This document shows, piece after piece, positions 6,882 through 53,507 of a stretch of 64,000 bases of DNA. The stretch's first letter is position 1. Each line of letters opens with the position of its first letter. A program made the position numbers and the translations under genes. A model generated the notes under the pieces. The model had not been told where the DNA came from and ran no database searches. It saw only the letters and a list, made by a program, of their open reading frames with translations. Source of the stretch: Zygnema circumcarinatum SAG 698-1b (Eukaryota; Plantae; Zygnematophyceae); the NCBI GenBank assembly GCA_037447605.1, contig CM074823.1, forward strand, positions 1,054,001 to 1,118,000, in the 5' to 3' direction.

Positions 6882-9800
6882 ATGGCGCGAGGAGGCACTT
6901 TCACCTTAAGCCTTTTCTTCGCCCTCTGTTCAGTGGTGCTTTCGGCGGCGGCCAAAAAGGACCTCTGCGCTCCGTTCGTGAACACGAATGAGACGACGTT
7001 CTCGGCTGACGTCGTGCGGAGTTGCTTCGGTCAGATTCCGTACAATGCTGACGTGGCGGCGAGCATGGTGGACTCCCTGAAGAAGGCGCTCGCCTTCATG
7101 CCGAGCGTCGACGTGGCGCTGAACTCTCCCACGAAGGAGCTCCCCCTCAAGGTCGACATTCGGAAGACCCTCACCGACATCGGCAAGAAGCAGTACAAGA
7201 GCGACCTGGAATTCAACAATGCGCTGCGTACTGCTTTCGATTCCCTGCGCGACCAGAACGTGGGGTACACGTCCTACTGTTACCCCTTCACCTCCGAGAT
7301 CGCGTTTCCGCTCGTTCTCTTCTGGAAGGACGGGCAGCCCGTCGTGCAGATCCGCCCGTCGTACAGTGAGCGCCGCCCCATCCCCTTCTTGCTCGCAGAT
7401 GTTTTGGCAATCTTGCCTTCTCAGGGTTTGGAAGTCGAAAAAAAATTGACATTCTAGAGTCTCGGTTTGGGTTGGATGTGTCCTGCTTTCCTTTTCATGA
7501 ATTGGAAGGGAGTCCTCGTATATAAATGCCATTCCTATCTCCTTTGGCTTTCGGAAGCTAGTCTCTTTCTCCCATTCCCTCTCTCTCCCTCTCACTCTCT
7601 ACTATAACCTCACATACACATGTCGACAGTTGTTATGATTTTTTTTCGTGCATGGCGGTTCTCAACATGCATGCATTCATGCTCATGTTGTTGTTGTCGT
7701 TGTTATTCATGCTCATGTTGTTGTTGTTGTTCATGTTGTTCTTGCTTTGCAGGCTCCCCGTCCGTGTACAACAAGACCTCGCTGAAGCTGAAGAAGGATC
7801 TGAGCCTCTTCGAATCCGCCGCGGTGGAGACCATCGAAGGCGTGCCCGCGTACGACTACCTTTTGTCCTTTGCGAACACGACGCAGGGCGGCTTCAAGGA
7901 CGTCAACGCGCGCCTCAACTCTCTCTTTGTCCGCCCGACCAATCTGTTCTCACAATCCGACGTATACCCATTTTACAGTGGAGGCTTTTCCTCTCGTCCT
8001 TATCTTGTGGAGAATGCCACGTTATCCATGCAAATCAGGAGGTGAGTACAAATTTTAATACGGTGATAGGGAGTGGAGCTAAAAGAAACAAATTGTCAGT
8101 GGCTTTTATAGAAATTGCGTGAGTTAAGTTTGAGCCGTACATATATTTGACAGGAAAGGGAGTTGGTTGAAGCTCTGTTACAATTTTTTGATGAAGTATG
8201 TACTTTCGAGCCCTTGACTTCCGTCAAGCAAATGCACGATACAAGCACTTTCCTCTTTTCGGTTCTTTGTTCTGTCATCACTCCTCAACTCCATACTGAA
8301 CGCTCATTGCGAGGTTGTTCTGCTGCCGTTATTCTGCTGCAGAGTGGGGCAAGCCAAGTCGGAGAAGCTCTCAGCTCCGTGGTACACAACTTTTCCTTAC
8401 GGTCCAATCTTCGACGATATCACGAGTTACTATAGATATAACTGCATCAACTCTCAGTTTTATGGTGGAGATTACGATTCTTCTAAAAGCTTATCGGATC
8501 GAAAGAGTGTATTCGACGATTCCTCTCGACAGCCAGAAGCGGACCCAATGGCAGGCTCCCAGCAGCCGGCTCTGACTGCAAAGAGCAAGAGCATGACTGG
8601 TGCTGAGCAACTCGTTGATGGAGTTGTTAGTGTAAGTGACCCCATTATATTGTTTCTATCCATGCATATCGATTGCTATGGATCTCCGTCTCTCCCTCTC
8701 CATTCGCCCTTCTCTTATTCTCTTACCATTCTTTCGCTATTTCTCCTCGTACCGACTGAAAACGTTCTTTCGTTGGATTCCCCACCTCCTTAATCTGAAT
8801 CTTTCTGGCTGTTACCCAGTGCTTCCCCTCCAGTCCCTCACCGTCTCCACCCCGCCACTTATCATATCTCTCTCTCACACACCTGCACTATTCGCCTGCC
8901 TTCTGATGCCCTACCCTCTCCCTCTATCTGTGTCCCTCGAACAATCCAAGGGTGTGCGCGCTGTGGCATAGTCCAATGCAATCCTCGCAAAACGATACAC
9001 GATTTTCTTACATGTACTCGTTTGAATGTGATGTCTGTGCATGCAGGCATGGCTTCTGCCGGACAACAAAACAGGAGTCCTTGTTATACCCGATTTCGGG
9101 CGGCGTACCTATTTCGATGAGTGGTACCCGAGCCTTGTTCTGAGCTTGGTCACATTGAAGTAAGCGTTTCGATTCTCCCCTTGTCCAATTGGCACTGTAA
9201 ACAGGTTTTTCAGCATGGCACATTTGACGTGATTGCATTGTCTAGTCACTCTATTACCCATCAATTCCAGAGAGCACAGAATTCGTATATGTCTCAAGCC
9301 AATGAAACCCTAACTCCATCTATTTGACGTACGTCCAGACGAGCTGCGAATCAAATCATCATCGACGTGGCTGACGCATCCGGCGGGTATTCGAGTCGAG
9401 TTGACGATCTCATTCAGTTCTTGTTCCCCTCTCTCACTTTCACTGCGTATCCGAGCGAGTTCAGAGCGACACGTCTCGCCAAACTAACTGTGAAGGCCGC
9501 CGTGAACGCAAACAAAACATACGGCTTATACGACTACAGTGCATATAGCGACTTGAATGGCCTGCCACTGACAGAGAAGAACTTCTTCTTTCCAGTCGTA
9601 TCTAAGACCTTCAACGGGAAGAAGGCGGATTATTCGAAGCAGTTGACTGTGTTCTATAAGTCCAATATTTTTCAGCCATCCAACCTAAAACCGCTTTTCA
9701 AGGCTGACGATATTCTTATCCTCACCAATGGCTTGTGCTACGAGAGGTGCGCGGAATTCATCTTCAAGGCGCAGGTACGTTGATCCCTTTATGTAGATCA

Positions 9801-10244
9801 TTGCCATCTTTCTTTGGCTCCGTTCGTCTTTCCTTATCTCCCTCTCTCTCTTTCCCCTCACCCTTGTACTCTGGTTTCAACCTCATGTCTCACTTTCTCA
9901 AGCTTTGTGTGCAGGAATTTGCGGGAGTGAAAAGTGTCGGTGTGGGAGGTATTCCCCAAAAGCCGATGGCCGTCGGAGGAGGCGTCATTGGCCTCAAATA
10001 TAACATCGACTCTCTTAGGTTTGACTTGTATTATTACAAATTACTCACTGACAAGGACGCCCCTTCGGACCCTCCTGTCCGTATAAATTTGGAGTTCCCC
10101 ATCCTCCAGTCGTACTGCAAGGCGAGCTCTGCGATTCCCGCGGACTTCGTCTTCAAGGCCGCGAATTACCGCTTTGACCACGCGGCCGAGACGGTCCTGG
10201 ACAGGCCTGCCACGTGGGCGAAGGCGGCGGAGTCCTTTGCTTGA
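6882..10244 (+). CDS. Secreted fungal-type S41 peptidase-like protein, catalytic residues replaced; copy 1 (646 aa)
   Basis: Six GT-AG exons: 6882-7365, 7753-8041, 8343-8631, 9047-9159, 9339-9774, 9915-10244, totalling 1941 nt in frame. Signal peptide [24 protein letters not shown]. Motifs [65 protein letters not shown] and [13 protein letters not shown] match the S41/CPAF-like series in order. Confidence 0.85.
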
Positions 10245-52800: not shown

Positions 52801-53507
52801 GAGACTGGGAGAGAGGTGCGAGAAACCCTGGCTTTTGGAAGCCGAACGAGATGGCAATGCCAGTTGTACAGGAGGACCCCCTTCAAATTCATGAAATGGA
52901 AATGCAGGACACGCCCAGAAAAAGGAACCCTAAAATAACCGAGGCATTTCAATAAGCCCAAATCGTCATCCCGATTTTTTTTTTAAAAGAGTGCGAGCAA
53001 GAAGGAGATGGGGCGTCGCTCACTGTACGATGTACGGATCTGCACGACGGGCTGCCCGTCCTTCCAGAAGAGAACGAGCGGAAACGCGATCTCGGAAGTG
53101 AAGGGGTAACAGTAGGACGTGTACGCCACGTTCTGGTCGCGCAGGGAATCGAAAGCAGTACGCAGCGCGTTGTTGAATTCCAGGTCGCTCTTGTACTGCT
53201 TCTTGCCGATGTCGGTGAGGGTCTTCCGAATGTCGACCTTGAGGGGGAGCTCCTTCGTGGGAGAGTTCAGCGCCACGTCGACGCTCGGCATGAAGGCGAG
53301 CGCCTTCTTCAGGGAGTCCACCAAGCTCGCCGCCACGTCAGCATTGTACGGAATCTGACCGAAGCAACTGCGCACGTCGCTGGAAAGAAACGTCGACTCG
53401 GTCGTGTTCACGAACGGAGCGCAGAGGTCCTTTTTGGCCGCCGCCGAAAGCACCACTGAACAGAGGGCGACTAAAAGGCTTAAGGTGAAAGTGCCTCCTC
53501 GCGACAT
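49839..53507 (-). CDS. Secreted S41 peptidase-like protein, copy 8
   Basis: Exons 53507-53024, 52512-52218, 51935-51638, 51171-51059, 50753-50315, 50168-49839, frame intact. Motifs LRDQN, IIIDVTDNAGG and TNGLCNDNC. Confidence 0.85.
50779..50917. repeat. Interstitial telomere-like (TTAGGG/TGAGGG)n in copy 8 intron 4
   Basis: About 22 hexamer units read directly. Confidence 0.92.

Follow-up and report, generated by a model that had tools for sequence, protein, structure and literature searches.

A stretch of 64,000 nucleotides from the streptophyte alga Zygnema circumcarinatum SAG 698-1b (Zygnematophyceae; assembly GCA_037447605.1, contig CM074823.1, forward-strand positions 1,054,001 to 1,118,000), here called the window and numbered from its first letter, carries eight paralogous copies of a six-exon gene at 6882-53507. 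The encoded proteins are assigned by sequence to the CPAF-like S41 serine peptidases, and in all readable copies other residues stand at the positions of the catalytic His and Ser. The copies were detected by six-frame self-comparison of the window, by blastn with the exons of copy 1 and by tblastn. The cluster is bounded by two start codons, the ATG of copy 1 at 6882 and the ATG of copy 8 at 53507. Copies 1-4 are located on the forward strand (6882-26258) and copies 5-8 on the reverse strand (27496-53507), and the two blocks converge tail to tail. Six copies gave full in-frame models with canonical GT..AG introns, encoding 646 (copy 1), 648 (copy 3), 649 (copy 4), 645 (copy 6), 648 (copy 7) and 652 amino acids (copy 8). 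An earlier sequence-only reading of this DNA had described eight paralogs with a six-exon structure, six of them with complete in-frame models, and this was confirmed by blastn, tblastn and the splice-site models.

The exons of copy 1 (6882-10244, forward strand) are placed at 6882-7365, 7753-8041, 8343-8631, 9047-9159, 9339-9774 and 9915-10244 by transcript joints and an open frame, and the models of copies 3, 4, 6, 7 and 8 were obtained by projecting these exon borders onto the other copies. On the forward strand, copy 3 (15714-19084) has its exons at 15714-16197, 16572-16866, 17169-17457, 17870-17982, 18180-18615 and 18755-19084, and copy 4 (20971-26258) at 20971-21454, 22069-22360, 22970-23258, 23570-23682, 24114-24549 and 25923-26258. 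On the reverse strand, the exons in order of transcription are 42068-42551, 41370-41658, 40767-41052, 40219-40331, 39591-40026 and 39122-39451 for copy 6 (39122-42551), 46132-46615, 45490-45778, 44895-45189, 44352-44464, 43718-44153 and 43247-43576 for copy 7 (43247-46615), and 53024-53507, 52218-52512, 51638-51935, 51059-51171, 50315-50753 and 49839-50168 for copy 8 (49839-53507). Exons 3-6 of copies 1, 2, 3, 5, 6 and 7 are 87-93% identical to each other, copy 8 follows with approximately 79%, and copy 4 with approximately 61% is the divergent member, its amino acid identity to the other copies being approximately 55%.

Two copies are incomplete. Copy 2 (11133-13384, forward strand) is a 5'-truncated fragment without exon 1 and with only the second half of exon 2; it comprises exon 2 from 11133 onwards, exon 3 (11559-11847), exon 4 (12260-12372), a gap-broken exon 5 (12555-12823) and exon 6 (13055-13384). 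The assembly gap at 12824-12833 lies inside exon 5 of this copy. Its left flank stops at approximately nucleotide 267 of the exon, and its right flank consists of 172 unrelated nucleotides, after which no more than the final 48 nucleotides of intron 5 are present. As the flanks are discontinuous, the part of copy 2 with the Ser motif is either absent or unread. In copy 5 (27496-30627, reverse strand) exon 1 is represented by a remnant at 30415-30627, as the gap at 30628-30637 cuts this exon and its first 272 nucleotides are missing; the far side of the gap is a CT-rich upstream region. The remnant additionally carries a frameshift caused by a one-nucleotide insertion within a C run, and exons 2-6 are intact (29751-30045, 29146-29434, 28600-28712, 27967-28402 and 27496-27825). 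A further gap (23323-23332) lies in intron 3 of copy 4 with simple repeats on both sides and leaves the reading frame untouched, and the gaps at 31762-31771 and 48922-48931 are intergenic.

Database searches were performed exon by exon, and the joined proteins were used in local alignments, in the tree and for the substitution rates only. With single exons, the only Pfam match was obtained for exon 2 of copy 1, which matches PF23658 (PDZ_CPAF_rel) with 36.6 bits and an E-value of 5e-9 (gathering score 27); no exon matched Peptidase_S41, and exons 5 and 6 gave no match. A profile of exon 5 built from seven copies and searched against 1.84 billion representative proteins retrieved 68 matches, the best with 97 bits, and those scanned carry PDZ_CPAF_rel and, over the matched region, Peptidase_S41. 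When relatives and window exons were combined in one alignment for a homolog search, seven proteins were returned, none from this genome. As the best match reaches only 97 bits and none comes from this genome, the collections searched contain neither a close relative nor a protein of the alga itself. In profile comparisons with hhalign, the exon-5 profile aligns to the family profile with a probability of 99.8% (E 6e-29), placing a Glu under the catalytic Ser, and the exon-1 profile with 99.6% (E 2e-24), where the segment D-x-H...CY is present and an Asn lies under the catalytic His. From end to end, the joined protein of copy 1 can be aligned to the relatives at 22-29% identity (E 3e-65 for the relative P0002 and 7e-63 for P0004). 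The proposed membership in the CPAF-like S41 peptidases was thus supported by the Pfam match of exon 2, by the exon-5 profile and by hhalign, and by sequence the genes of the cluster are members of this family.

The eukaryotic CPAF-like S41 peptidases (PF23658 plus PF03572) include Netrium digitus P0004, Mesotaenium endlicherianum P0005 and P0006 and many proteins of Mortierellomycota, Glomeromycota and Basidiomycota. They resemble the window proteins in a length of approximately 650 amino acids, in domain order and in a signal-like N-terminus, and they have the Cys pattern and the motifs GVL..IIDxxxxxGG, GxCxxxC and VGG in common with them. Fungal peptidases of gene clusters for ribosomally made and post-translationally modified peptides, such as UstP, belong to the same family. 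The window copies differ from these peptidases in the replaced His, Asn and Ser, in a long stem and in the local expansion to eight copies. A sequence search of the PDB with the exon-5 profile gave only chance matches. The family profile matched the solved structures of Prc, CtpB, the D1 protease and, marginally, CPAF (E 0.014) and IRBP (E 0.18-1.7). P0002, the nearest intact relative, was modelled with AlphaFold (predicted local distance difference test score 85), and the model matches CPAF with an E-value of approximately 1e-12 and then other S41 proteases; the template modelling score to CPAF is 0.58-0.60 by target. The CPAF of Chlamydia trachomatis (CT858; PDB 3DOR, 3DPM, 3DPN) is an active bacterial Ser/His/Glu protease, and its S41 fold with an N-terminal His domain, an internal PDZ-like domain and a C-terminal Ser core is arranged as in the family. 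A variable or disordered segment between PDZ domain and core is found at the place of the CPAF inhibitory segment. Among the CPAF structure matches was one with the PDB title 'cpaf s499a mutant'; unlike CPAF, the window proteins have neither the Ser nor the His. An S41/CPAF fold is therewith predicted for the proteins of the alga itself.

The catalytic positions were read from a MAFFT alignment with 34 full-length relatives, in which 30/34 have the His, 34/34 the Asn of the NxGG loop and 32/34 the Ser; among 62 matches with a recognisable motif, the Ser is found in 60. In an alignment restricted to 30 full-length relatives, from which the two members without His and Ser had been left out, the only invariant columns are, in P0002 numbering, His141, Asn432, Gly434, Gly435, Gly553, Cys555, Ser557 and Gly578. 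In copy 1 the family motif D-x-H reads D-Q-N (7251-7259, forward strand), so that the former catalytic His is Asn126, in agreement between the MAFFT alignment and hhalign of exon 1. The motif D-x-x-x-N-x-G-G reads DVADASGG (9364-9387, forward strand), with the Asn replaced by Ala and the Gly-Gly pair kept. The motif [TS][ND]GxCxSxC reads TNGLCYERC (9724-9750, forward strand), with the nucleophile Ser replaced by Glu (codon 9742-9744) and both Cys residues kept.

The other copies agree with this pattern. The His site is Asn in copies 1, 3, 4, 5, 7 and 8 and Leu in copy 6, the motif being DQN in copies 1, 3, 5, 7 and 8, DKN in copy 4 and DQL in copy 6. The Ser site is Glu in copies 1, 3, 4, 5, 6 and 7 and Asp in copy 8, with the motif TNGLCYE[RK]C found six times and TNGLCNDNC once, and it is unreadable in copy 2. 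An acidic residue therefore occupies the nucleophile position in all seven readable copies (six Glu, one Asp). The Asn of the NxGG loop is replaced by Ala in six copies and by Gly in copy 4 and is kept only in copy 8; the loop motifs are DVADASGG (DMADASGG in copy 3), DLTDGVGG and DVTDNAGG. The statement of the sequence-only reading that both catalytic positions are replaced in every readable copy accordingly stands for His and Ser; its listing of the third motif among the losses does not stand for copy 8, as DVTDNAGG still fits D-x-x-x-N-x-G-G. Out of 29 columns conserved in at least 85% of the relatives, the copies keep 23, and all structural Cys and Gly columns are among those kept. Beside the three catalytic columns, those that differ are a Pro, a Gly and a conservative exchange of Glu by Asp. 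The window clade is moreover marked by 49 clade-specific invariant substitutions.

Candidates for a substitute centre were also considered. The six complete proteins have no His column in common, each containing one to three His residues in total. As for the alternative catalytic pairs, Ser/His or Ser/Lys, that had been named as contrary to a loss of catalysis, the missing common His column leaves no Ser/His pair, and a Ser/Lys dyad is possible. The Ser beside the Gly-Gly pair (ASGG) was rejected as a substitute, as it is Val in copy 4 and Ala in copy 8. At the level of the sequence the Ser/His mechanism is excluded.

Copy 1 is transcribed and spliced. Transcript contigs from four public runs of four studies were placed on 6850-12820 of the window, and they cover the exons of copy 1 with an intron coverage near zero. 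GT..AG skips were found in the contigs at 7365>7753, 8039/41>8341/43, 8631>9047 and 9770/74>9911/15, and loose contig ends at 9159 run on into the first bases of exon 5, giving a spliced frame of six exons with 646 open codons. Several contigs are identical to copy 1 without any difference, and one of these (9620-9747) spans the codon for the Glu that stands in place of the former Ser. Spliced contigs of copy 1 in runs from four studies bear out that the genes are transcribed. Contig joints connecting exons of copies 1 and 2 (8039>11557, 8631>12260, 9490>12775) were rejected as evidence for read-through or trans-paralog splicing because their shorter side is only 20-29 nucleotides of sequence shared by the paralogs in de Bruijn contigs, which makes them ambiguous. 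They are probably ambiguities of the assembly graph, and read-through or chimeric transcripts are still conceivable.

Pairwise ratios of nonsynonymous to synonymous divergence (dN/dS, omega) are 0.52-0.62 among the recent copies and 0.25-0.33 in comparison to copy 4, for which dS is approximately 1.3-1.5. Under a codon model the maximum-likelihood omega is 0.38 for six copies (twice the log-likelihood difference to omega=1: 180) and 0.52 for the five recent copies (47). The exon length differences between the copies are all multiples of three, compared to 1-18% gapped positions in the introns of the closer copies and up to 43% in comparison to copy 8. Constraint differs along the protein, and conservation, even towards copy 4, is highest in the N-terminal domain where it surrounds the former His, in the loop of the former Ser and in a C-terminal strand. 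Values of dS form a mosaic between the exons, e.g., 0.015 in exon 2 and 0.25 in exons 1 and 3 for copies 1 and 7, which points to an exchange between copies by gene conversion. The view that the genes are maintained thus holds, with omega significantly below 1 and exon indels in frame; on balance, the family is maintained and evolves fast, as many secreted multigene families do.

In each of the six complete proteins the N-terminus shows a basic residue, a hydrophobic core and a motif of small residues, and a C-terminal anchor is absent; on the basis of this signal-like N-terminus the proteins are predicted to be secreted. Each protein contains 7-9 Cys residues, and the conserved ones probably form disulfides. 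The N-x-S/T sequons, earlier described as many, number 6-8 per protein, which is a moderate number.

The nearest relatives, with 27-29% identity, are proteins of the Zygnematophyceae Netrium digitus and Mesotaenium endlicherianum and two transcriptome proteins, all with His and Ser, and more distant matches come from early-diverging fungi, Basidiomycota and an amoebozoan. A quick maximum-likelihood tree shows the six window proteins as monophyletic with a support of 100 on a stem of 1.24 substitutions per site; they are sister to P0002 plus P0013 (97), within a group with the proteins of Netrium and Mesotaenium (94). This placement implies a single loss of the catalytic residues, which took place among the intact enzymes of a streptophyte algal lineage and preceded the separation of copy 4. 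It had been proposed that the loss predates the expansion, and the absence of His and Ser in copy 4 together with the monophyly on a long stem supports this. The label fungal-type, in contrast, has to be given up, since the nearest relatives are streptophyte algal proteins with His and Ser. A horizontal origin from fungi, considered as a candidate, is unsupported at this level, as the window clade nests among streptophyte algal sequences. Two fungal members of the same subfamily, P0010 of Mortierella sp. (KAG0211324.1; DGI/CWGAC) and P0041 of Cristinia sonorae (KAH8091645.1; DGN/CRGVC), have likewise lost His and Ser, independently of the window copies. Unlike these, each of the two is a lone representative with active fungal paralogs around it in the tree, with Ser replaced by Gly and the Asn of the NxGG loop kept, and no expansion is known for them.

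The cluster is best understood as encoding lineage-specific, secreted CPAF-like S41 derivatives that do not cleave and that would work by binding in the retained PDZ domain and cleft, an explanation that is considered probable without being assured. The proteins descend from CPAF-like S41 serine peptidases with an N-terminal domain, a PDZ domain and an S41 core, and on the stem of the family Ser was exchanged for Glu or Asp, His for Asn or Leu and the Asn of the NxGG loop for Ala or Gly. As the catalytic residues are replaced, the proteins cannot cut by the Ser/His mechanism of the family. The retained scaffold of PDZ domain and cleft would most likely hold, uncleaved, the C-terminus of a peptide or protein, or else some other ligand, and the proteins may act as extracellular binders, decoys or regulators. 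The expansion proceeded by tandem duplication with exchange between the copies. The binding function, including the roles of decoy, receptor, adhesin or pheromone-like protein suggested in the sequence-only reading, is to be regarded as putative.

Several points weigh against this explanation. Exon 3, the linker, evolves at an omega of approximately 1, and the dN of 0.056 among the youngest copies lies near their intron divergence (0.04-0.08), so that constraint is weak there. Gene conversion violates the assumption of a single tree and weakens the omega tests. The contigs were taken as spliced RNA from their coverage pattern, the type of the runs not being on record. The acidic residue conserved at the nucleophile position could mean a new chemical role instead of a dead site. 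A remodelled active site may also be envisaged.

In an alternative, the fixation of the acidic residue and the remodelling of the cleft, after the Ser/His machinery had been lost, would have created a new activity. The proteins would then be either a new acid-based hydrolase or a specific receptor or decoy that meets peptide signals or proteins of microbes outside the cell, and tandem duplication with gene conversion would have diversified the family as in immune or recognition gene families. This is regarded as a tentative idea that is clearly less likely to be true than false.

A different function for a non-catalytic scaffold is suggested by the vertebrate IRBP/RBP3 and its amphioxus homologs, which are secreted S41 derivatives that have lost the catalytic Ser (PMC10120077). 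They are secreted glycoproteins that act, or were proposed to act, by binding and not by cleavage (PMC10120077). In analogy to IRBP, which holds retinoids and fatty acids, the window proteins could carry ligands other than peptides, such as small hydrophobic ones, or they could be structural glycoproteins of the wall or matrix. The precedent that a dead S41 scaffold can hold lipophilic ligands is consistent with this, as are the secretory features with the sequons and the very high contig depth in the runs examined, depth being a poor measure. The PDZ and cleft-forming segments, which serve the recognition of peptide C-termini in S41 proteases, are however retained and conserved, and IRBP belongs to a different S41 branch, whose modules are of the single-domain bacterial type and lack the N-terminal His domain of the CPAF type, and its scores to the family are marginal. 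A carrier or structural role is regarded as unlikely. Descent from the IRBP branch is unsupported as well, as IRBP (E 0.18-1.7 against the family profile) scores below CPAF (E 0.014) and far below Prc and CtpB. As judged from the sequences, the window family is an independent loss in another S41 branch. Furthermore, IRBP of vertebrates is a four-module tandem protein and not a gene cluster, and its ligand is known.

It could also be argued that the family is mostly decaying and that the copies owe their intact look to recent tandem duplication and to gene conversion, none of them having a maintained function. This would fit two broken copies out of eight (the truncated copy 2 and the frameshifted copy 5), the omega of 0.52-0.62 among recent pairs, a dN near the intron divergence for copies 1-3 and the conversion indicated by the mosaic dS. 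However, omega=1 is rejected in both codon-model tests, every exon indel is in frame, and spliced copy-1 transcripts occur in the runs from four studies. Copy 4, at a dS of approximately 1.4 and 55% identity, still has an open frame of 649 codons and has lost none of its ten splice sites and none of the conserved Cys and Gly residues. Decay of the family is therefore held to be distinctly improbable.

Least likely, and doubtful on several counts, is that the proteins are still enzymes, with Glu or Asp, possibly together with the Asn or Gln of D-Q-N, as an acid centre (glutamic-peptidase-like or another hydrolase) or with a Ser/Lys dyad recruited elsewhere: an acidic residue in the former Ser column of 7/7 readable copies across a dS of more than 1.3, a loop around it that ranks with the best conserved stretches, the 18 Ser and 18 Lys residues that are invariant and 49 clade-specific substitutions that look like remodelling and not decay speak for it, but the partner positions vary (Asn or Leu at the His site, Gln or Lys before it, Ala, Gly or Asn in the NxGG loop), so that a fixed new catalytic centre is not expected, the Ser by the Gly-Gly pair is not conserved (Val in copy 4, Ala in copy 8), and no S41 member is known to work in this manner.

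In view of IRBP/RBP3, of the amphioxus homologs (PMC10120077) and of the fungal P0010 and P0041, which also lack His and Ser, the assertion that no family of this kind has been described could not be upheld. Secreted S41 derivatives without the Ser are already known, and what is new is their occurrence in the CPAF-like branch, in a streptophyte alga and as a local expansion to eight copies; a literature search found no description of S41/CPAF pseudo-proteases or of S41 in streptophyte algae. The non-cleaving binding proteins proposed here would add an independent and well-delimited case in which a serine protease scaffold became a maintained, expressed, non-enzymatic protein with predicted secretion, and this among the algae most closely related to land plants. 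What makes the case unusually clean is that intact algal relatives are available for comparison and that the three catalytic columns are changed and the conserved structural Cys and Gly columns kept, and the seven readable paralogs of differing age reveal which positions are still constrained. Should the ligand be found, a system by which streptophyte algae recognise or signal outside the cell could come to light. The idea of a fungal-type gene acquired by an alga is corrected, because the family forms a streptophyte algal clade.

The surroundings of the genes are rich in repeats. A (CTCTCC)n array precedes copy 1 at 6374-6868 on the forward strand and ends 14 nucleotides before the ATG. Equivalent arrays lie upstream of the start codons of copy 3 (14554-15708), copy 7 (46622-47173, reverse strand) and copy 8 (53515-53795, reverse strand), and CT-rich sequence is found upstream of copies 4, 5 and 6, too (20510-20789 and 30638-30900 are among the CT-rich arrays). 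The arrays are 0.3-1.2 kb long, lie with CT on the coding strand and end approximately 6-14 nucleotides from the start codon, and they represent a conserved element of promoter or 5' leader. They account for the extreme GC and AT skews and for the long low-complexity open reading frames (ORFs) upstream of each gene. The 3' flanks are homologous as well, with 73-91% identity over 0.2-0.6 kb (10245-10863 versus 19085-19530, 26979-27483, 38507-39121 and 43018-43234), so that the duplication unit reaches past the coding region on both sides.

Within the introns, interstitial plant-type telomere-like repeats (variants of AAACCCT/GGGTTA) are found in the two divergent copies, namely in introns 2 and 4 of copy 4 (22667-22854 and 23838-24066) and in intron 4 of copy 8 (50775-50918). 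A (TCTA)x221 microsatellite at 24681-25566 fills most of the 1373-nucleotide intron 5 of copy 4 and explains a mechanical ORF of 382 amino acids at this place. Between copies 5 and 6 lies a gene for a leucine-rich repeat protein (33099-36835) with approximately 3.8 tandem units of 200 bp at 35408-36158. Just outside the cluster, an ORF of 743 amino acids (55552-57783, reverse strand) has an ankyrin repeat match and is partly a GAGGGG-type simple repeat. A pentapeptide repeat suggested by Pfam at 61116-61748, below threshold, is probably an artefact, as the underlying ORF coincides with a 15-bp tandem DNA repeat (TTAGGGTTAGAGAAT x39) at 61082-61667.

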